Positions 1 to 41,736 of a DNA stretch of 64,000 nucleotides are shown piece by piece. The notes beneath the pieces are model-generated. The model had not been told where the DNA came from. It was given only the letters and a program-made list of their open reading frames with translations, and ran no database searches. Position numbers and translations under genes: made by a program. The stretch is from sequence record MT661596.1. The stretch is one strand, 5' to 3'. Positions within the stretch are counted from its first letter, which is position 1, and every line of letters starts with the position of its first letter.

Positions 1-18
1 GGGCAATTAATAATGACA

Positions 19-354
19 CCAACAACCGAAGGCTAAAGAGATGCCATTGCATCACATGAGTAATCCCAGCAGTCATGTCACCCTATATCCAACCTACAGG
101 TGATATGCAAAGACTTAAAGGTCTCCTACATTAGGGTCGCTGTGAGGTTACAATATCAAAGGGTGGATATCCTGGTGTTGTTATGAACACCGGTGAATAG
201 AATGGGTTTATCCTCTTTATAGGTTAGTGCCCACATAACTGTCTTGGTCGTTTGATACGATGACAACCTTTAACTGCGGGGGACTAAAAGTAAGTTACTT
301 GCACTAACTTGCGAGCAGTTAACTAATTCAAGACGATACACGTATGGTTGTTGG
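19..354 (+). ncRNA. candidate large structured ncRNA upstream of tRNA cluster
   Basis: No long ORF; 9-bp closing helix CCAACAACC(19-27)/GGTTGTTGG(346-354); internal helices 47-52/105-110, 55-59/73-77, 241-246/329-334, 270-277/315-322; possible pseudoknot 85-91/164-170. Confidence 0.5.
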
Positions 355-362
355 CTGGCTGG

Positions 363-372
363 TCTATATTAC
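363..372 (+). promoter_or_regulatory. early (virion RNAP)-type promoter motif ahead of tRNA cluster
   Basis: TCTATATTAC matches the recurring CCTAYATTAY motif and phiKZ early TATTAC core. Confidence 0.5.
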
Positions 373-454
373 TGTGTGTTTCGTGTCTCCATCTAACCGC
401 GTGGTGAATATAAAGTGAAGAGCACAGCACTCTGAGCAAGCGGTGTCAAATTTA

Positions 455-531
455 GGAGCCATAGTTCAGTTGGTTAGAACGCTACCCTGTCACGGTAGAG
501 GTCGCGGGTTCGAGTCCCGCTGGTTCCGCCA
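455..531 (+). tRNA. tRNA-Asp(GTC)
   Basis: Cloverleaf GGAGCCA/TGGTTCC, anticodon loop CT-GTC-AC, TTCGAGT T-loop, G73 plus encoded CCA. Confidence 0.97.
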
Positions 532-537
532 AACAAT

Positions 538-613
538 GTTCTGCTCATCTAGCGGCTTAGGATTACGGGTTTTCAGTCCGTCCACCGGGGTTCGATTCCC
601 CGGCAGAACACCA
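538..613 (+). tRNA. tRNA-Glu(TTC)
   Basis: GTTCTGC/GCAGAAC acceptor, loop TT-TTC-AG, TTCGATT T-loop, encoded CCA. Confidence 0.93.
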
Positions 614-623
614 AACATGGAAA

Positions 624-726
624 GGTGTGTTGGCAGAGTGCGTGAATGCGCTAACCTTTAAGTTGGTTAGTATAGGCTGACTCAGAAATGATAGGCTTAT
701 CGTGGGTTGGAATCCCACACACGTCT
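624..726 (+). pseudogene. aberrant class II (long variable arm) tRNA-like gene, possibly Leu(TAA)-derived
   Basis: Acceptor GGTGTGT/ACACGTC, D arm TGGCAGAGTGCGTGAATGC, anticodon arm CTAACC-TTTAAGTT-GGTTAG (8-nt loop), about 30-nt variable arm, T-loop TTGGAAT, no CCA. Confidence 0.6.
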
Positions 727-753
727 TTCTATTTCTTTTTTTTTTTTATCAAT

Positions 754-860
754 GGCGACAGTCTCTTTAAGAGACAAGCACCCAATGTTGTGATTAGAGC
801 AACCTCTAATATGTCAACGGAATGCGGTAACCCCTGTGAAACTCAGGGTGTCGTCTACCA
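754..860 (+). ncRNA. tRNA-like RNA ending in ACCA
   Basis: GGCGACA/TGTCGTC stem stacked on T-arm-like CCCTG-TGAAACT-CAGGG, 3' TACCA, long internal hairpin instead of an anticodon arm. Confidence 0.6.
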
Positions 861-932
861 AATATGGTTTGCTGTCGAAACGTGAGAGTTAAATAAAATA
901 ACTTTCCTTGGCGGTAAGCCATTCCCATTAAT

Positions 933-1010
933 GGTGGTGTTAGTTCAGTTGGTTAGAATTCAGGAATGTGACTCCTGAGGTCGAGAGTTCAAATCTCTCA
1001 CACCACCCCA
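933..1010 (+). tRNA. tRNA-His(GTG)
   Basis: G-1:C73 pair, GTGGTGT/ACACCAC, loop AT-GTG-AC, TTCAAAT T-loop, encoded CCA. Confidence 0.95.
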
Positions 1011-1091
1011 ATTGTGAGTTACCTGATATGAGACAGCTACAGCAGCAAGTCAGGTAGCTCATATTTACACTTATACCGATTAGAGGTCAAA

Positions 1092-1433
1092 ATGAGTGAA
1101 CAGAATCTGGCGACTGTTAGTAAAAATGGTTGTTCGAAAGTTTGTTCAGCTAAAAGTTGTAATGAGTTCATCTTCATTAGCTCTAATGATAAACTAACAT
1201 GTAAGCGCTGTGGCACCCCAAGATTGCTAAGCCATGGCGAAGTCATTGATGCGTTCCCTAGAAAGAACAGTGAGTTCTTTGACCGGGTAAATCAGCTGAG
1301 TCGTTACTCCTTTCATAAAGGCACTGACTCCGTTAAACGAGTGCCCGACCCAGGCGGTAACTATATCGACTACCATGAAGTTGTAGAACTCATGTCATTA
1401 GCCGATGAACGCATTCGTGAATTAAGTAAATAG
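1092..1433 (+). CDS. hypothetical protein with Cys-rich (Zn-ribbon-like) N-terminus
   Basis: 113 aa, GAGGT RBS, several Cys incl. CKRC. Confidence 0.7.
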   Translation: MSEQNLATVSKNGCSKVCSAKSCNEFIFISSNDKLTCKRCGTPRLLSHGEVIDAFPRKNSEFFDRVNQLSRYSFHKGTDSVKRVPDPGGNYIDYHEVVELMSLADERIRELSK

Positions 1434-1443
1434 CACCACTATG

Positions 1444-1516
1444 TAGAATGTAGCTTGAGGAAAAAGCAGCCGACTAATAATCGGGGATTTCGCCAGTTCG
1501 AATCTGGTCATTCTAC
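1444..1516 (+). tRNA. tRNA-Ile(AAT), no encoded CCA
   Basis: TAGAATG/CATTCTA acceptor (extendable), D arm GCTT/AAGC, CCGA-CT-AAT-AA-TCGG anticodon arm, GCCAG-TTCGAAT-CTGGT. Confidence 0.8.
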
Positions 1517-1598
1517 AACCCTATCATGATTGATGATACCACGTAAGAAAAATATTTATTAGCACGTACGCTAATCCATTTTTTACGGGGAATTCATC

Positions 1599-1994
1599 AT
1601 GATAATCGATAAACTCATTAATGCTAAACCAACCTATCTTTATAAGTTAGATGGTGAAGTTTGTAAAGACGAATACACAACACTAGAAGGGTTCAGTGAC
1701 TGTATTAAGTGGCATCTGTCACTTAATAACTTCAATGTGATTGGCGTCTTCTATAATGACCAACCAGAAGATTATTACGGGTCGGGTGTCGTATTAGGTT
1801 ATGATAAAACATCGTCGGAGTGTTTTGTTATTGAGCTAAGCCACTGTTCCTGTTATGGTATTCTGGATGTAGATGCTTGGGAGGATATCCAACCGGAGCG
1901 CTACAGTGTTGAGTTGTTAGATAAGGCATATTCTGAAAACAGACTTACAAGTGAATTAACAGAGCTAATCGAACATTGCATCGCACAGATGTAA
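1599..1994 (+). CDS. hypothetical protein
   Basis: 131-aa acidic ORF with GGGA-like RBS. Confidence 0.75.
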   Translation: MIIDKLINAKPTYLYKLDGEVCKDEYTTLEGFSDCIKWHLSLNNFNVIGVFYNDQPEDYYGSGVVLGYDKTSSECFVIELSHCSCYGILDVDAWEDIQPERYSVELLDKAYSENRLTSELTELIEHCIAQM

Positions 1995-2063
1995 AGGAAT
2001 AACACCGGAGGTAACACTCCGGTTGTTTCCACACGCACCCAATAACGCACGCAGGTACTTACT

Positions 2064-2378
2064 ATGTTAATATTAAAACACATTACATCTAAACACGCGC
2101 TACCGGGAACGCCTGAAGGTGTTTCTATGCACCCATTACCTGTTGGATATACTTTATATCCAATAGATAACCATGTGTTGGATGGGCGTGAGGTTTATCA
2201 CAAAGATGCTCGCTATGTCGTTCAGTTCCTTGATACAAAAAACGAGCAACAAACAATCATCGTGTCTTGTAATGACGACGCGTATATCTTGAATAATGAA
2301 GGTAAAACTATCTACACAATCCACAGGACTATCGTTCAAGGTAGTAAACTAATTAAAGCTAACGGTAAATCTAAATAA
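2064..2378 (+). CDS. hypothetical protein
   Basis: 104-aa ORF with AGGT RBS. Confidence 0.7.
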   Translation: MLILKHITSKHALPGTPEGVSMHPLPVGYTLYPIDNHVLDGREVYHKDARYVVQFLDTKNEQQTIIVSCNDDAYILNNEGKTIYTIHRTIVQGSKLIKANGKSK

Positions 2379-2457
2379 TAGTTTAAGCCGTTGGTTAACA
2401 AGATTAAACCAGATATAATGGTTTAATAAGACTGGCTTTCACCCGGTCTTAAAAACA

Positions 2458-2558
2458 GCCGAAGTCGTCTAAGTGTGAAGACAGCATGACTATATGTGAC
2501 CGTGACTTACCACGAAGCCACACGTCATGAAGATGTGGTTTTAACAACCACCTTCGGC
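2458..2558 (+). ncRNA. four-way-junction structured RNA domain
   Basis: P1 2458-2464/2552-2558, P2 2467-2470/2479-2482, P3 2485-2490/2524-2529 with nested helices, P4 2535-2540/2546-2551; loop-loop AAGT/ACTT. Confidence 0.55.
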
Positions 2559-2567
2559 AACCCAATA

Positions 2568-2666
2568 CAGTCAATCAACTGATGAGCCGTGGACTTTAAA
2601 CTGGCGGCGAAACGGATGGCGGTTCATATACCACTTAACAGTTGTTTATAGCCATCCGTATTGGTT
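2568..2666 (+). ncRNA. type I hammerhead ribozyme
   Basis: CTGATGA 2579-2585, stem II GCCGT/GCGGC, GAAA 2609-2612, 9-bp stem III ACGGATGGC/GCCATCCGT, GUA cleavage triplet 2658-2660, stem I AATCAA/TTGGTT. Confidence 0.92.
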
Positions 2667-2771
2667 AAGGCGTTACGTTGTTAGGACGTAGCCCATAGGT
2701 TTGCATTGCAGGCTTATGGGATGCGATTGCCTGGCATCAGCGATGTGTCCATTACAAACTCCTCATAAGTC

Positions 2772-2803
2772 AGGTCGGGGTGAGAATCCCGACCTTTATG
2801 CCG
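2772..2803 (+). terminator. hairpin + TTATGCCG 3'-end element
   Basis: AGGTCGGG/CCCGACCT stem then TTATGCCG. Confidence 0.6.
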
Positions 2804-2832: not shown

Positions 2833-2842
2833 CCTACATTAC
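2833..2842 (+). promoter_or_regulatory. early-type promoter motif
   Basis: CCTACATTAC upstream of 2896 ORF. Confidence 0.65.
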
Positions 2843-2895: not shown

Positions 2896-3084
2896 ATGAA
2901 ATGGATTATTGGTATCATTGTTAGTATAGTGTGTTTTAACATATATGTGGTGATGAATGAATCGTATACATTACCTTATGCAATAGCACATTGTGTTGTG
3001 ACAATACCAACCCTCATACTCGTGGCGTGGCAGAGAGGCGATATATGTCCATTCAACAATTCTCCTACTGATAAGAGGGGGTAA
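2896..3084 (+). CDS. small membrane protein
   Basis: 62 aa, two hydrophobic segments, AAGGTG RBS. Confidence 0.7.
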   Translation: MKWIIGIIVSIVCFNIYVVMNESYTLPYAIAHCVVTIPTLILVAWQRGDICPFNNSPTDKRG

Positions 3085-3086
3085 CT

Positions 3087-3272
3087 ATGCGATTAGCAGC
3101 GATAGTAGCTTTAATCATAATGCTTCTATGTGTCACTATTGTTATTGTTCAATCTGAATATGACCCGACCCTAGACCAGTTAAAAGGGTTCATCGTGGGC
3201 TCTATATCAGGTGTGTTCATCACACTTATATCAGCATATATAGTGCATAGTTCATTATGTAAGAAGCAGTAG
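3087..3272 (+). CDS. small membrane protein
   Basis: 61 aa, two hydrophobic segments, GAGGGG RBS. Confidence 0.7.
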   Translation: MRLAAIVALIIMLLCVTIVIVQSEYDPTLDQLKGFIVGSISGVFITLISAYIVHSSLCKKQ

Positions 3273-3313
3273 CATAATCCAAAAGGGGTGTTAATACACT
3301 CCTTTTTATGCCG
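3272..3313 (+). terminator. hairpin + TTATGCCG element
   Basis: AAAAGGGGTG/CACTCCTTTT stem then TATGCCG. Confidence 0.6.
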
Positions 3314-3342
3314 TTAAACTTTAAATCGCAGTTGATTTTAAA

Positions 3343-3352
3343 CCTACATTAC
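3343..3352 (+). promoter_or_regulatory. early-type promoter motif
   Basis: AAACCTACATTAC upstream of 3403 ORF. Confidence 0.7.
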
Positions 3353-3402
3353 ACAGTTGAATATAGTAAATCTAATTAATAATCTATTTTGGAGATTCAA
3401 TC

Positions 3403-5450: not shown

Positions 5451-6431
5451 ATGAATATGTCAAAACGTTTAACACGTCTATATGCATGTGGTGGTGCTGG
5501 TATCAATATTAGTGCTGGTATTACCGATAATGTTGACGTGCCTGGTTTCAGTGATACCAAAGTATCTCGTGTAGACACCAGTGTGGCTAACCTTACAACT
5601 AACATGCCAGAAGACTCTGTGTTTGTTCTGGCAGGTGCTGATGGTTCCGGTAAAGAGCGTCGCCATAACTACCGACCTGTTGTTGCAGCACTTCCTCAAA
5701 TCTTAACACTACACGCACCATGCGACTATAACATCGTGTTGTTCTCTGCATCGGGCGGTTCTGGCTCTGTAATCGGTCCTGTTATCCTGGGTGAGCTACT
5801 AAAACGTAAATTACCATCAGTTGCTATTGTTATTGGCACTACAGGTTCTAAAACTGAAGTACAAAATAGCATCGATACGTTGAAGTCATTATCCGGTGTT
5901 TGTAAAGCTTCTAAGTTACCATTAGTCATGGTCTACCTTGAAGTTAACCAACATAACAGCCAAGCTGATGTTGACCGTCAGGTTACTGCAGCTATTACCC
6001 AACTGCTTAGCTTGTTCGACTCACATGCATCAGGTCTAGACTACAAAGATATCACTAACTTACTGCAATACACTAATATTCGCGGTGGTGTGGAATCTCT
6101 GATGTCTATGGATATTTACATCGATAACGACATTGAAGCTATTACAGGTTCGTTCCCACCATCTATGGCGACTGTGTATAAAGATGATGAACGTCCATCT
6201 CTTCCTGTCACTCCTGGTTATCATGCAACCGGCACTCGTGATAAATCCGTGACTGATGAACGCATGAAAGTAACCATTCACTTTGTTATCACTGAACCAC
6301 CTGTGAAAGAGCATTTTGATGGTTTGGAAACCCGCCTTAAAAATATCATCGATGGTGAAAACGCTGTTGGCAACATCGCCGGTGTTTTAAGCGACGACGA
6401 TGAAGTTGATGGTTTAGGTATGGTACTGTAA
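5451..6431 (+). CDS. phuZ: phage tubulin PhuZ
   Basis: ACGGAGIN, VDTS, GSGK, SASGGSGS tubulin signature and acidic C-terminal tail DDDEVDGLGMVL. Confidence 0.95.
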   Translation: MNMSKRLTRLYACGGAGINISAGITDNVDVPGFSDTKVSRVDTSVANLTTNMPEDSVFVLAGADGSGKERRHNYRPVVAALPQILTLHAPCDYNIVLFSASGGSGSVIGPVILGELLKRKLPSVAIVIGTTGSKTEVQNSIDTLKSLSGVCKASKLPLVMVYLEVNQHNSQADVDRQVTAAITQLLSLFDSHASGLDYKDITNLLQYTNIRGGVESLMSMDIYIDNDIEAITGSFPPSMATVYKDDERPSLPVTPGYHATGTRDKSVTDERMKVTIHFVITEPPVKEHFDGLETRLKNIIDGENAVGNIAGVLSDDDEVDGLGMVL

Positions 6432-6552: not shown

Positions 6553-6586
6553 ACACCCCACCCAAACCGGGTGGGGTGTTATGCCG
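6553..6586 (+). terminator. hairpin + TTATGCCG element
   Basis: ACACCCCACCC/GGGTGGGGTGT then TATGCCG. Confidence 0.65.
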
Positions 6587-11375: not shown

Positions 11376-13523
11376 ATGGACTTATTCATTAAAGATGCCT
11401 CTGAGTACAAGAGAGATTTAAGGATTTCACACCACTACGTGGAAGCAAACGCAACAGCTATTCGATTAGCAACTAATTGCTCAATGGAAGAAGCTAGAGA
11501 ATTTGTAAAGAAAACAACAGGTCCTGGAGGTAAACACGAGCTTAAAGACCCTAAGGTCAAGGTGTTAGTCCGTGGTAAAAACGGTGACCGTTCATTACAG
11601 TACACAACTTTTAACAAATTCTTAGGTGCTGTAGAAAAACGTAATGCAATCCTTAGCCCATCTTTAACTGCGTATCTACATCCAGATGAGAAGATATCTC
11701 AATACTCGGTAGCAACAGATGCCAACATAAAGGCACGTAAAGTAATAAAGAAAGAGATGTTTGCCGCAGAAGCTGTTCACGATAAAGAAACAGCTGCTAT
11801 GAAAGACATTCTCCAAACGGGTCGTAAGTTAACTAACAACGGTATGTCTGGTGGGTTCTGTACAGCATCCACACCGTTCTTCTGCCGTTCTGCACATAGT
11901 TCGTTAACTTCTTGTTGTCGTTCCGCTACATCGTCGACAAACGCTTTTAATGAGAAGTATCTGGCAGGAAACAGACACTATCATTCACCTGATATTGTTA
12001 TTGAGAATATATCAACAATCATTAATAACTCAGATTTTGTTGCTATTAAAGAAGCAATGGATTACCATAATCTGAAATACCCGACGGTAGAACAGACAAT
12101 GGCGTGTATCTATCGCTCGACTAGACGTTATTGGACTGACCGTAAACACATGCAATATATAAGTTGTATTGTTGGTAATATGTCTGATTTGGAACGTGCG
12201 GCATTTATGTTCACAAGTGACATGTATCACTTACGTGAAGTTAACCCAGAGTTTGTAAAACAATTTTTATTGGAATTGGCAGAAAGAACTCTGGAACCTT
12301 GTTTAGACGACGTTGTAATGTCTGATGGTGATAGTCGAGTGTTAGCAACAATGAAATGTGCCGACGAAATTGTTGTTGTTGGTCGTGAGTTAAAAGCTAA
12401 CCGTAAAGAGGGTGAAAAAGATGTCGACCCTGCATCGACAGAACAGGTAAAACAACTGTTGAAAGCAAACTACCTGTTGTCTCAAAAGAATGTAATGAAG
12501 TATAAGCCCTATATTCGTGCATTCCTTGTGACACCTAATACACCATCATCTATTGCAATGATGCCGTTCCACGTCCGTGAGACAGTGTTAGCGTCAGACA
12601 CGGATAGTTCTATCTTCACAGAGCAAGAGTGGATAGACTGGCTAGAACCTAATTATGAGAACCGTCAGCAACGTATCCAGATTAACGCAGCTGTGACGTT
12701 CTTGGTATCACAACAAGTTGTTCATTTACTCGCCATTATATCAGGTAACATCGGTGTCCCAGATGAGCATCTGTTTAGACTGACAATGAAGAACGAGTAT
12801 TTCTTTGAATCGTTTGTCTTGACTAATATGGGTAAACACTATTTTGCAACAATGGCCGCTCGTGAAGGTAACTTCTATGACGAACCTAAGCTTGAACTCA
12901 AAGGTGTTCATTTAAGGAACTCTAACGTACCAAAAGAAATAAGAACCCGAGGTAATAAAATCATCAATCAGATTCTTGATAAATCAAATAGCAATCAGCA
13001 ATTTTCAGTAACTGAGCTATTGAATCAGGTTGGTGAAATAGAGCGTTATATTTACAACTCTATCCGTTCTGGTGAAACTGTGTTCTTAGCAAAAACAACT
13101 GTTAAGGATAAAGAGTCATATACAAAACCATTAAGTAATAACTACTATTATTATTTGATGTGGCAAGAAGTTTTTGCACAGAAGTATGGTGACGCGCCTC
13201 CATTACAGTACATTGGTCTTAAAGCGAAGTGTGGACTTACGTCCAAGTCAGCTATTAATGATTGGTTGGATGAGTTAGAAGACCAGGCATTAGCAGACCG
13301 CATGCGTAAATTCCTCACTAAGTACAATAAAGACAAAATAACACAAATTGTAATGCCAGCCGATATCGTAATGAACACCGGTGTTCCTTCAGAAATTATT
13401 GAAGCTATCAATATCCGTGGTTTAATTATGGAAAACATCGGTATGGTGTATAGTTGTTTAGAATCATTAGGTTTGTATTTTGTTAACCCTAATAGCACAC
13501 GTCTAGTATCTGACGAACATTAA
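11376..13523 (+). CDS. family-B DNA polymerase, catalytic subunit (phiKZ gp50-like)
   Basis: KLTNNGMSG (motif B-like), SDTDS (motif C), MKNEY, LELKGVHL. Confidence 0.88.
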   Translation: MDLFIKDASEYKRDLRISHHYVEANATAIRLATNCSMEEAREFVKKTTGPGGKHELKDPKVKVLVRGKNGDRSLQYTTFNKFLGAVEKRNAILSPSLTAYLHPDEKISQYSVATDANIKARKVIKKEMFAAEAVHDKETAAMKDILQTGRKLTNNGMSGGFCTASTPFFCRSAHSSLTSCCRSATSSTNAFNEKYLAGNRHYHSPDIVIENISTIINNSDFVAIKEAMDYHNLKYPTVEQTMACIYRSTRRYWTDRKHMQYISCIVGNMSDLERAAFMFTSDMYHLREVNPEFVKQFLLELAERTLEPCLDDVVMSDGDSRVLATMKCADEIVVVGRELKANRKEGEKDVDPASTEQVKQLLKANYLLSQKNVMKYKPYIRAFLVTPNTPSSIAMMPFHVRETVLASDTDSSIFTEQEWIDWLEPNYENRQQRIQINAAVTFLVSQQVVHLLAIISGNIGVPDEHLFRLTMKNEYFFESFVLTNMGKHYFATMAAREGNFYDEPKLELKGVHLRNSNVPKEIRTRGNKIINQILDKSNSNQQFSVTELLNQVGEIERYIYNSIRSGETVFLAKTTVKDKESYTKPLSNNYYYYLMWQEVFAQKYGDAPPLQYIGLKAKCGLTSKSAINDWLDELEDQALADRMRKFLTKYNKDKITQIVMPADIVMNTGVPSEIIEAINIRGLIMENIGMVYSCLESLGLYFVNPNSTRLVSDEH

Positions 13524-40294: not shown

Positions 40295-40404
40295 TACAGT
40301 CGTCAACACCAGTGAAATAAAGTAGTGCAAACCAATAAGCCGGTACATTACGTACCGGCAATACTTCCCGTTATTTATTTTTTATATCTATAAGAGAATT
40401 AATC

Positions 40405-41736
40405 ATGTCTGAAGGAAAAGCGGTAGTAGAAGAGTTTCGTAAAATGGCTCGTGTCGTTTTAGTTGATGATGTAATCCCACATCCAAATGCCGATAAACTG
40501 GAGCTAGCTATTATAGGTGGTTGGCAATGCTGTATTAAATTAGGTGAGTTCAAGAAAGGCGATAAGGCGCTTTATTGTGAGATAGACGCGCTAGTACCTA
40601 CGATAAACCCAGCCTTCTCTTTCCTAGAATCTCGTAAAGAAGGATTGAAATCATTTAACGGTATTTCTTACGCACGCATTAAAACAATTAAATTAAGAAA
40701 AGAGATTTCTCAGGGTTTGTTATTACCACTGCCAGATGAATTCAAAGACGCTGAAGTAGATACTAACTTATCAGAACAACTGGGTGTTCTCAAGTACGAA
40801 AAGTCAGAATCTAAAGCGGATGATGAGGATACAAAGAAACAGTATAGTCTTTATCACCGCTTCGCATTATGGTTATATGGTTCTGATAGACCAAACCTAC
40901 CATTCCCAGCATTCCTAAGAAAGTCTGAAGAAAATCGTGTTCAAAACATCAACAGTCAGTTTAAAGTTGCTCACGACACTTGTGAACGTTTTGAGATGAC
41001 AGTGAAGTTAGATGGTGAGTCAATGACTGTCTACTCACATCGTAATGAGAAAGGAAAGATTGTATTTGGTGTCTGTTCTAGAAATATGGAACTGTATCTT
41101 GATGACCTTAACTATACACCTACTGAAGCGTTACGTAAGTGGCTAGGTAAGCTTCTATTAAGAAACAGACGTGCTATTACATTACAACCATACATCCACC
41201 CACAAGACGTTACAGGAGTCTTAGATTGGATTAAGCAATCTGCAATAGCTTTAAAACAATGTGTTCGTATAAATGTGGGTTTACCTAAATGGGTTTCTTC
41301 TGTCAAAGCAACAGATGACCGTTTTGTAAAATATGTCAGTGACAATAAGTTATTTGATAAACTTGCTGCTGCAACTATCTCTACTAATGGTAAAACCTAT
41401 TCTGTTCAGGGTGAATTAATTGGTCCTGGCATTCAAGGTAATTACGAAGGTGTCGATAAACTTAGTTATTATGTTTATCGCGTATTCGATTCAGAGGGCA
41501 ATGTGTTAACACCTTATGAAGCTAGAATCTGGTGTAGCATTAATGAGTTCGCTTATGTACCTGTATTAGAAGCCGAAGCTTTACTTCCAGAGACTATTAA
41601 AGACTTAGTCAAACAAGCTGAAGGTAAACGCTCCTTAGCTAAAGGCGGTAAACGCGAAGGTATTGTTCTTAAATCAAACACTCGTGATTTTTCATTTAAA
41701 GTAATATCAGAAAGCTACTTATTAAACGAGAAGTGA
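40405..41736 (+). CDS. ATP-dependent RNA ligase, DRB0094/Rnl5 type with N-terminal OB domain
   Basis: HPNADKLE, SQGLLLP, KLDGES, QGELIGPGIQGN, REGIVLK, FKVIS. Confidence 0.9.
   Translation: MSEGKAVVEEFRKMARVVLVDDVIPHPNADKLELAIIGGWQCCIKLGEFKKGDKALYCEIDALVPTINPAFSFLESRKEGLKSFNGISYARIKTIKLRKEISQGLLLPLPDEFKDAEVDTNLSEQLGVLKYEKSESKADDEDTKKQYSLYHRFALWLYGSDRPNLPFPAFLRKSEENRVQNINSQFKVAHDTCERFEMTVKLDGESMTVYSHRNEKGKIVFGVCSRNMELYLDDLNYTPTEALRKWLGKLLLRNRRAITLQPYIHPQDVTGVLDWIKQSAIALKQCVRINVGLPKWVSSVKATDDRFVKYVSDNKLFDKLAAATISTNGKTYSVQGELIGPGIQGNYEGVDKLSYYVYRVFDSEGNVLTPYEARIWCSINEFAYVPVLEAEALLPETIKDLVKQAEGKRSLAKGGKREGIVLKSNTRDFSFKVISESYLLNEK

Follow-up and report, generated by a model that had tools for sequence, protein, structure and literature searches.

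The first 2.8 kb of a 64,000-nucleotide stretch of DNA (the window) hold a dense cluster of RNA genes, among them a predicted hammerhead ribozyme beside a tRNA-shaped cloverleaf and a large conserved non-coding RNA that we call Block A. The window corresponds at 100% identity to positions 124001–188000 of Proteus phage 10 (PP10, MT661596.1), whose 223 kb genome encodes the PhuZ tubulin at window positions 5457–6431. PP10 is a PhuZ-encoding chimallivirus, a nucleus-forming jumbo phage. Among catalogued phages it is closest to RAY, Ea35-70 and AH06 (Erwinia phages, Agricanvirus), with ~66% amino-acid identity in the conserved DUF7484 protein, in which Salmonella phage SA002 has 52%; RAY is established as nucleus-forming (PMC10299810). 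In the 14 kb that we inspected, the deposited PP10 record contains coding sequences (CDS) and no tRNA or other RNA features. The elements central to our analysis are the following.

1–454, plus strand: Block A, of which these are the 3′ three-quarters; a structured, conserved non-coding RNA of ~600 nt, identified by comparison
2403–2450, plus strand: two invariant hairpins (2403–2427 and 2428–2450) at the start of Block B, after the stop codon of the 104-aa open reading frame (ORF104), read from the sequence
2458–2558, plus strand: tRNA-like cloverleaf, a four-way junction with tRNA geometry and covarying pairs
2569–2666, plus strand: type I hammerhead ribozyme motif, starting 10 nt beyond the cloverleaf, with a predicted cut between 2660 and 2661
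2661–2803, plus strand: predicted 3′ cleavage product, a ~140-nt structured tail with conserved hairpins, ending in a terminator hairpin (2772–2795) and UUAUGCCG (2796–2803)

All but the first belong to Block B (2379–2895, folding z = −4.95), whose RNA unit, 2379–2803, runs up to the terminator. When Logan and NCBI contigs were queried for exact protein matches, close relatives of PP10 came to light in public runs and in one NCBI assembly; IMG/VR and JGI metagenomes, searched by protein, yielded none. Three PP10 sub-lineages were compared: L018 (~92–96% nucleotide identity), L014/L015/L016 (~93–98%), and L006 to L012 (~83–86% in CDS). Gene order is retained across them and tRNA content varies. 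Coordinates outside the window refer to L001, the PP10 region including upstream sequence, and to the loci of RAY (L002), AH06 (L003) and SA002 (L072).

A first-pass annotation, made from the letters of the window, had called a hammerhead here, and its core is complete. CUGAUGA lies at 2579–2585, GAA (G12 to A14) at 2609–2611 within a GAAA at 2609, and GUA precedes the cut, with A17 at 2660. Stem I (2573–2578/2661–2666) has 6 bp, stem II (2586–2590/2604–2608) has 5 bp and stem III (2612–2620/2651–2659) has 9 bp. The pairs A15.1–U16.1 and G10.1–C11.1 correspond to A2612–U2659 and G2586–C2608, and position 17 (A2660) is not a G. The flank AGUC (2569–2572) has the potential to pair with GACU in loop II (2592–2595), forming a pseudoknot. 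A descriptor requiring the core and at least 5, 3 and 4 bp in stems I, II and III, composed post hoc with the candidate already known, matched this single site across both strands of the window, against 0.005 matches expected per shuffle (200 dinucleotide shuffles). A relaxed descriptor gave no match in 300 shuffles of the 18-kb RAY locus.

The junction domain of the first-pass annotation is a four-way junction laid out like a tRNA. A 7-bp closing, acceptor-like stem (GCCGAAG/CUUCGGC) leads through a U-C connector into a 4-bp D-like stem with an 8-nt loop, followed by a 45-nt anticodon-like arm capped by the conserved loop ACUUAC (2515–2520). A 5-nt variable linker (AAGAU) then precedes a 5-bp T-like stem with a 7-nt loop (UUUAACA), directly abutted by the 3′ acceptor strand. 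Helix lengths and connectors are those of a tRNA (alignment A5). The cloverleaf passes neither ARAGORN nor the Rfam tRNA model, and a sixth Rfam tRNA match was absent at E ≤ 10; of the two tRNA-like RNAs announced in the first-pass annotation, one is a class-II gene recognized by Rfam (described below), and this cloverleaf is the only candidate for the other. We also considered an intron-containing pre-tRNA, and rejected it since no consistent U33-anticodon-R37 register was found across lineages.

The cloverleaf-hammerhead module recurs at a syntenic non-coding gap in RAY (upstream of gp204, the homologue of ORF138), AH06 and SA002. BLASTN and nhmmer searches of Blocks A and B against RAY and AH06 found nothing, and the homology of Block B is visible by structure and motifs only. 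Model R1 of the cloverleaf, built from PP10-lineage sequences only, had its top hits at L002 12102–12221 in the RAY locus (18.2 bits), L003 12925–13046 in the AH06 locus (17.6 bits) and L072 12701–12809 in the SA002 locus (20.2 bits, E = 0.0017). Its next-best matches were genuine tRNAs, which argues that the cloverleaf is tRNA-like in shape. As the R1 scores alone are insufficient, homology rests partly on synteny and shared motifs: RAY and AH06 have GUCGUCU...AGAC in common, and all three phages have the loop ACUUAC. The SA002 copy is followed by A-CCA. The model-fitted alignment had 99.7% of its cells paired and 10 of 30 pairs changed on both sides, compared with 23–46% and 0–2 pairs in slid controls. 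Between RAY and AH06, both the cloverleaf-ribozyme part and the following ~490 nt carry structure-preserving substitutions without codon periodicity (pair keeping P < 0.001, with 9 and 8 double compensations).

The hammerhead core is invariant in 11 PP10-lineage sequences and in RAY, AH06 and SA002 (five lineages), and the elements around it change in ways that keep their pairing. The potential pseudoknot reads AGUC/GACU in PP10, AGUCG/CGACU in SA002, CGUCG/CGACG in RAY and CGUCU/AGACG in AH06, with two covarying positions. Stem I is unrelated in sequence yet complementary in PP10 (AAUCAA/UUGGUU) and RAY (ACUCC/GGAGU). Within the PP10 lineages, loop II is invariant as well, stem III changes G-C to A-U (PP10 vs. 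L006) and U-A to U-G, and stem II changes U-G to U-A. The cut-site triplet is GUC in RAY and AH06 and GUA in SA002 and PP10; the predicted cuts fall at 12445|6 in the RAY locus (L002) and at 12981|2 in the SA002 locus (L072). The hammerheads of RAY, AH06 and SA002 have the loop II motif GACNUUAAA in common, and this group has stem III inserts of up to ~100 nt, because of which covariance model R2 of the hammerhead missed the RAY and AH06 ribozymes. Pattern scans of IMG/VR returned RAY-like contigs only, apart from chance coding matches, for the cloverleaf motif, and RAY-like contigs plus one chance coding match for a hammerhead-specific pattern. In phiKZ, the first 50 kb were scanned; they cover the surroundings of PhuZ, where no long non-coding gap occurs, and gave no hammerhead descriptor match. 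In RAY, a second ACUCC-CUGAUGA string lies at L002 11359–11365, ~950 nt upstream of the hammerhead; GAAA and stem III counterparts are missing, and the string could be a relic or have arisen by chance.

The cloverleaf and the ribozyme always co-occur in the lineages examined, as would be expected if the hammerhead were a regulated switch, with the cloverleaf sensing a protein, a tRNA enzyme or a ligand and controlling either decay of the upstream mRNA or release of a 140-nt trans-acting RNA. Loop sequences conserved beyond the needs of pairing and a structurally conserved post-cleavage tail fit such a switch, and regulated phage hammerheads have been proposed by Perreault et al. (PMC3088659). 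However, the spacer between the two elements ranges from 10 nt to ~75–95 nt, which argues against rigid allosteric coupling, the ribozyme's own stabilising pseudoknot is typical of constitutive fast cleavers, and the tail after the cut site varies from 140 to ~440 nt across phages. We regard a switch as very unlikely.

Substitution patterns indicate that both blocks function as RNA. Block A is 90–93% identical to relatives whose CDS show 72–89% (PhuZ 87.6%), and Blocks A and B are ~90% identical to the L006 lineage. Third codon positions of PhuZ have diverged by ~34%, compared with 9.6% for Block A; third codon positions of neighbouring genes evolve ~3.5 times faster than the two blocks. In the blocks, substitutions are spread without codon periodicity (p = 0.2–0.9), whereas in CDS controls 73–95% of changes fall at one codon position, and stop-free stretches reach at most 63 codons, so protein coding was ruled out. 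As a test of structure, we took the minimum free energy fold of the PP10 sequence alone and asked whether substitutions in relatives keep its pairs. On the plus strand of Block A, 187 pairs were kept against L006, compared with 176.5 ± 2.7 expected (P = 0.0005), with 6 double compensations where 0.9 were expected; against L018, P was 0.0025, with 4 double compensations and 0.4 expected. On the minus strand, pairs were kept at chance level (P = 0.64 and 0.84), although the strand-symmetric double compensations were still significant. RNAalifold placed 189 pairs in Block A, 7 of them covarying and every one of these in a local hairpin. For Block B against L006, plus-strand pair keeping gave P = 0.0005 with 5 double compensations, and the signal was stronger on the plus than on the minus strand. 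Judged by these substitutions, Blocks A and B are plus-strand RNAs, and purifying selection on them is strong.

Since the blocks are long, conserved and non-coding and contain inverted repeats, they could also act at the level of DNA, for example as a replication origin, packaging site or array of protein-binding sites, and some of the double changes do count on the minus strand. Pair keeping is nonetheless strand-specific, significant only on the plus strand for Block A and stronger there for Block B, with many G-U pairs, and this is why we read the blocks as RNAs. A full hammerhead core, a pseudoknot and a tRNA cloverleaf are moreover RNA features, and the unit that contains the blocks has a promoter motif at one end and a terminator at the other. 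We give the DNA-level explanation almost no credence.

The full Block A spans L001 5859–6455 (window −142 to 454), between tRNA-Met and tRNA-Asp. The structured RNA of roughly 340 nt described in the first-pass annotation therefore has comparative support, and is in fact the 3′ part of a ~600-nt block that begins 142 nt before the window. Thermodynamics gave no signal (z = −0.6 for the whole block, ~0 in sliding windows); genuine tRNAs likewise score ~0, so z-scores are not decisive here. Searched against Rfam at E ≤ 10, L001 5850–6460 had chance-level matches only (E ~1–5, <20 bits, unrelated families), and the non-ribozyme parts of Block B, searched as an isolated block, matched no family at the same threshold. 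Covariance model R3 of Block A found no homologue in the RAY, AH06 and SA002 loci, and a Block A motif pattern scan of IMG/VR gave 0 matches. RNase P RNA, tmRNA and group I or II introns were considered as identities and rejected, as no signature sequences were seen by eye and neither Rfam nor ARAGORN returned a match.

Like GOLLD and ROOL, which occur near phage tRNA islands (10.1101/2024.12.08.627333), Block A is a ~600-nt multi-domain conserved non-coding RNA in a phage tRNA island, and like GOLLD env-38 it lies directly downstream of tRNA-Met. Unlike them, it matches neither Rfam model, whether as the isolated block or in wider Rfam scans, its predicted structure is unrelated, it is found only in the PP10 lineage, and there is no evidence of its multimerisation. 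Block A is probably a large lineage-specific RNA co-transcribed with the tRNAs. The comparison across chimalliviruses that the first-pass annotation had proposed divides the cluster, with the cloverleaf-hammerhead module present in RAY, AH06 and SA002 and Block A undetected in those loci.

Between and beside the two blocks lie the tRNA genes and their less regular neighbours.

455–531, plus strand: tRNA-Asp (GUC), found by ARAGORN and Rfam, 97% conserved in the L006 lineage
538–613, plus strand: tRNA-Glu (UUC), found by ARAGORN and Rfam, missing in the L006 and L018 lineages
624–726, plus strand: aberrant class-II tRNA-like gene, 36.6 bits with the Rfam tRNA model (gathering score 29)
727–933, plus strand: structured spacer, a 5′ T-run followed by hairpins, folding z = −5.3
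934–1010, plus strand: tRNA-His (GUG), found by ARAGORN and Rfam, degenerate in L006 and fused with the 5′ part of tRNA-Asp in L018
1443–1517, plus strand: tRNA-Ile with the unusual anticodon AAU, found by ARAGORN and Rfam, 97–100% identical in all relatives

The four tRNAs of the first-pass annotation, Asp, Glu, His and Ile(AAU), are each a canonical cloverleaf with a 7-nt anticodon loop, and its structured spacers are borne out by the folding scores of 727–933 and Block B. The cluster extends beyond the window edge, with tRNA-Tyr, Asn and Met at L001 5610–5858, 150–390 nt upstream. Only Tyr and Ile(AAU) are present in all three sub-lineages. The anticodon of tRNA-Ile(AAU) is unusual for bacteria and phages and its CCA is not encoded; it is the most conserved tRNA of the cluster, and its identity holds even in the lineage with CDS at 83–86%. 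The class-II tRNA-like gene was not called by ARAGORN. It has UUUAAGUU in its anticodon region, a non-canonical anticodon loop of 8–10 nt, a 30-nt variable arm and no encoded CCA.

The tRNA complement of the operon is fluid among sister lineages. In L018, ~460 bp between the D-arms of tRNA-Asp and tRNA-His are deleted, leaving a chimeric tRNA with mismatched acceptor strands (L018 5836–5925) that is the product of recombination between identical D-arm segments of the two genes. The L006 lineage is without Asn, Glu, the class-II tRNA-like gene and most of the 727–933 spacer; its tRNA-His is a degenerate remnant with an altered anticodon loop (L006 7098–7190), and its tRNA-Met sits after ORF113. 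The class-II gene is missing from L018 too, and the spacer, of which 76 nt only remain in L006, is fully deleted there. Being missing or truncated in the nearest relatives, this gene and this spacer are dispensable. Tyr(GUA), Asn(GUU), Asp(GUC) and His(GUG) of PP10 are exactly the four GUN-anticodon (queuosine) tRNAs, the target set of colicin E5, and two of the four are missing in sister lineages.

Such turnover raises the possibility that the non-canonical elements as a whole are decaying tRNA genes and neutral spacer without function. The class-II gene and the 727–933 spacer fit that description, and the Asp/His chimera and the His remnant document active turnover of tRNA genes. For Blocks A and B we reject it, given their 90–99% identity where third codon positions have diverged by ~34% and their significant compensatory changes; the hammerhead and cloverleaf are also kept across phage groups with only ~52–66% amino-acid identity in a conserved protein. 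As an account of the whole cluster, decay is unlikely. The first-pass annotation had suggested that the non-canonical RNAs are something other than decayed tRNAs and had named conservation in relatives as a check. That suggestion stands for the two blocks, which evolve slowly under constraint, and falls for 624–726 and 727 to ~858, which the nearest relatives have lost.

Three protein genes interrupt the RNA genes, and promoter motifs precede the cluster and the next gene downstream.

365–372, plus strand: early-type promoter motif TATATTAC (TACATTAC in relatives), 83 nt upstream of tRNA-Asp
1092–1433, plus strand: gene for a 113-aa protein (ORF113), annotated CDS with codon-periodic substitutions
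1599–1994, plus strand: gene for a 131-aa protein, phrog_8792, annotated CDS
2064–2378, plus strand: gene for a 104-aa protein (ORF104), annotated CDS with codon-periodic substitutions
2835–2842, plus strand: the following early-type promoter motif (TACATTAC); an unannotated 62-aa membrane ORF (2896–3084) starts 61 nt further on

The three short ORFs of the first-pass annotation are all annotated CDS, and those of 113 and 104 aa are real genes, as their substitutions are biased to the third codon position; no known function matched any of the three. The early-type motif is likewise present, at 365–372 rather than at 363, and the picture of a dense RNA-gene cluster in 2.8 kb behind such a motif holds. 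TAYATTAC lies 49–73 nt upstream of six plus-strand ORF starts (ORF62, ORF138, PhuZ, two others and an RNA ligase described below), and it matches the published predicted promoter consensus sequences of phiKZ, EL and 201phi2-1 (PMC7058600). The copy at 2835–2842 is invariant in 11 sequences. At gene ends, the window has at least 17 copies of a signature made up of a GC-rich hairpin and then UUUUAUGCCG, which is also present in RAY and SA002; given this recurrence, we read it as the standard terminator of these phages. In all three phage groups, the unit closes with this signature, with TAYATTAC 33–48 nt beyond; in PP10 the tail terminator ends at 2803 and the next promoter motif (2835) stands 39 nt after the terminator. 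Both signatures should improve annotation of these genomes.

We further noted that the terminator consists of a 9–12-bp GC-rich hairpin and then (Y)UUUUAUGCC(G), for example at 2772–2803, 3281–3313, 6553–6586 and in the 17096–17086 region, and is often trailed 26–48 nt later by TAYATTAC. A classical hairpin + T12 terminator lies at L001 5361–5410 (record 123361–123410), between a 91-aa CDS and the nearby start of the tRNA cluster; elsewhere the UUAUGCCG type is used instead, and the T-run at 727–750 after the class-II tRNA-like gene resembles the T12 form. Beyond the RNA unit, two small hydrophobic ORFs, 2896–3084 (62 aa) and 3087–3272 (61 aa), are unannotated in GenBank and called in most related contigs, and a 66-aa ORF is called in relatives at ~3273–3402.

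Our preferred reading, which we hold to be reasonably probable, is that the region is most of a ~3.2-kb operon (record 123.6–126.8 kb) in which tRNAs, mRNAs and non-coding RNAs are interleaved behind early-type promoter motifs, with a built-in RNA-processing cassette at its end. Transcription would begin from the TAYATTAC motif at 365, and probably from a second one that precedes tRNA-Tyr, and would end at the terminator at ~2803. Processing at the tRNAs, and probably at the cloverleaf as well, would fall to host RNase P and 3′ tRNA nucleases, with the hammerhead cleaving itself between 2660 and 2661. Hammerhead products carry 2′,3′-cyclic phosphate and 5′-OH ends. The upstream RNA would then end in a folded cloverleaf-ribozyme with a 2′,3′-cyclic phosphate, presumably a poor substrate for 3′ exonucleases and poly(A) polymerase, and a 140-nt structured RNA with a 5′-OH start would be released, carrying the terminator. 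Through self-cleavage and a folded 3′ end, such a cassette would determine where RNAs end and how stable they are in the last part of the operon, with no phage-encoded nuclease involved.

Several observations weigh against this reading. Self-cleavage, the RNase P cut at the cloverleaf and the discrete products are predictions from sequence. The hammerhead scores 17.1 bits in Rfam, where the gathering score of RF00008 is 48.5 and no clan member does better, a low score that we attribute to the type I permutation and the large size of the loops. The ribozymes of the L006 lineage and SA002 have a break in stem I, and that of RAY has a weak stem II; in these three, cleavage may proceed at other rates or need cofactors. 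The R1 scores of the cloverleaf are modest (E ~0.002–0.04, on a rough calibration), and one genuine tRNA-Met scores higher, at 23 bits. The long-range helices of Block A are invariant, with zero covariation, and its comparison covers three close sub-lineages. Finally, the strong conservation of the loops ACUUAC and GACNUUAAA suggests a partner or function beyond simple end-setting. It is conceivable, though we think it unlikely, that the cloverleaf-hammerhead RNA and Block A are new trans-acting classes of chimallivirus RNA, the former a tRNA mimic that its own ribozyme frees and protects at the end, engaging a host or phage tRNA-binding factor and the latter a GOLLD/ROOL-like scaffold acting on the co-transcribed tRNAs. 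Examples of such factors would be a tRNA-targeting defence nuclease, a tRNA-modifying enzyme or an RNA export route from the phage nucleus.

The first-pass annotation had gone further and joined the cluster into one system with an RNA ligase encoded elsewhere in the window.

40405–41736, plus strand: Rnl5/NgrRnl-type ATP-dependent RNA ligase with an N-terminal OB domain (PF21189, 2.6e-25; PF09414, 1.6e-20)

The OB-fold ligase itself is confirmed. It matches Naegleria gruberi RNA ligase (PDB 5cot, E = 4.5e-41), with which it shares the OB domain and the nucleotidyltransferase domain (PF21189, PF09414), and differs from it in being ~100 aa longer, with an insertion between the matched stretches. 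In the proposed system, the non-canonical RNAs would serve to decoy or inhibit host defences that target RNA (anticodon nucleases, PARIS, type III/VI CRISPR), with the ligase repairing cleaved tRNAs or joining ribozyme products. That phage tRNAs and ligases can counter anticodon nucleases is well established as a concept, the cloverleaf mimics a tRNA and has a conserved terminal loop, PP10 has all four GUN-anticodon tRNAs, and the ligase carries the same early promoter motif (TACATTAC at 40344). That motif is its own, however, and the gene lies 37.6 kb from the RNA cluster, without genomic linkage; its family occurs in 325 phage records from many unrelated groups (~92-kb Pseudomonas phages, 160–170-kb Aeromonas phages, jumbo phages). 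Rnl5/NgrRnl-type ligases seal 3′-OH/5′-phosphate nicks, and the enzyme would be ill-suited to hammerhead products because of their 2′,3′-cyclic phosphate and 5′-OH ends; the four ORFs flanking the ligase, the only ones scanned, gave no Pfam match and thus no end-healing kinase/phosphatase like the Pnkp that works with Rnl1 in T4-type tRNA repair. The tRNA set varies among sister lineages, and the cloverleaf is without a 7-nt anticodon loop. The link to the ligase is not supported, a decoy-and-repair system is quite unlikely, and the RNA ligase is probably an independent accessory gene.

Set beside known RNAs, the processing cassette that we favour resembles theta ribozymes, which are hepatitis delta virus (HDV)-like (Kienbeck et al., 2024, PMC10879173), in that a small ribozyme is genetically coupled to a tRNA-shaped phage RNA. 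Theta ribozymes sit at phage tRNA 3′ ends, with a proposed role in end maturation without host nucleases (PMC10879173). They cut within ±1 nt of a real tRNA 3′ end, freeing the tRNA, whereas the predicted cut in PP10 is 102 nt downstream of the cloverleaf, so that the ribozyme stays attached. The ribozyme class also differs, the PP10 cloverleaf is not a decoding tRNA, and the hosts are Enterobacterales for PP10-type phages and gut Bacteroidota or Bacillota for theta. Non-tRNA RNAs in a phage tRNA cluster also have a precedent in T4, whose tRNA region yields the stable RNAs species 1 and 2, presumably by RNase P processing. The likeness, which is one of embedded non-tRNA or tRNA-shaped elements, stops at the ribozyme, which the T4 RNAs lack.

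With YrlA, a bacterial Y RNA (RF02553), the shared feature is a tRNA-mimicking module in a non-coding RNA. PP10 has no YrlA match except a 22-bit overlap with real tRNAs, and no Ro/Rsr-binding stem was identified. Partial matches occur at L002 11143–11206 in RAY (44.5 bits) and L003 11420–11484 in AH06 (37.3 bits), below the gathering score of 69. Their order of T-arm, closed acceptor and D-arm suggests a tRNA-like module in circular permutation; both lie ~1.1 kb upstream of the hammerhead, where the two phages are 83–92% identical.

Nucleus-forming phages keep transcription apart from translation and are protected from DNA-targeting defences, which makes RNA handling a central question. New here are a ribozyme, predicted to cleave itself, that at least three chimallivirus groups have conserved (the model phage RAY among them) together with a constant tRNA-shaped partner, and a ~600-nt conserved RNA in a tRNA island; no Rfam 15 family matches either block in its entirety. 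Should the cassette work as proposed, it would show that in nature a ribozyme can define the 3′ terminus of an operon RNA.

Our literature search found no paper mentioning hammerheads together with chimalliviruses. Phage hammerheads between genes have been proposed to process long transcripts (Perreault et al., 2011, PMC3088659). The PP10 motif shares with those of phages and prophages (PMC3088659; Rfam clan CL00010) a full core, three stems, a loop II pseudoknot and an intergenic position in a polycistronic unit. It differs in being type I with large loops (II, 13 nt; III, 30–100 nt) and scoring 17 bits, in its fixed place beside a cloverleaf ~140 nt before a terminator (more in RAY and SA002), and in residing in nucleus-forming jumbo phages. 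A loose pattern, CUGAUGAGCCG-N8-20-CGGCGAAAC, matched 46 unrelated viral contigs in IMG/VR (L020–L065), several with two matches within 1 kb; judged by this pattern, they are probably other phage hammerheads.

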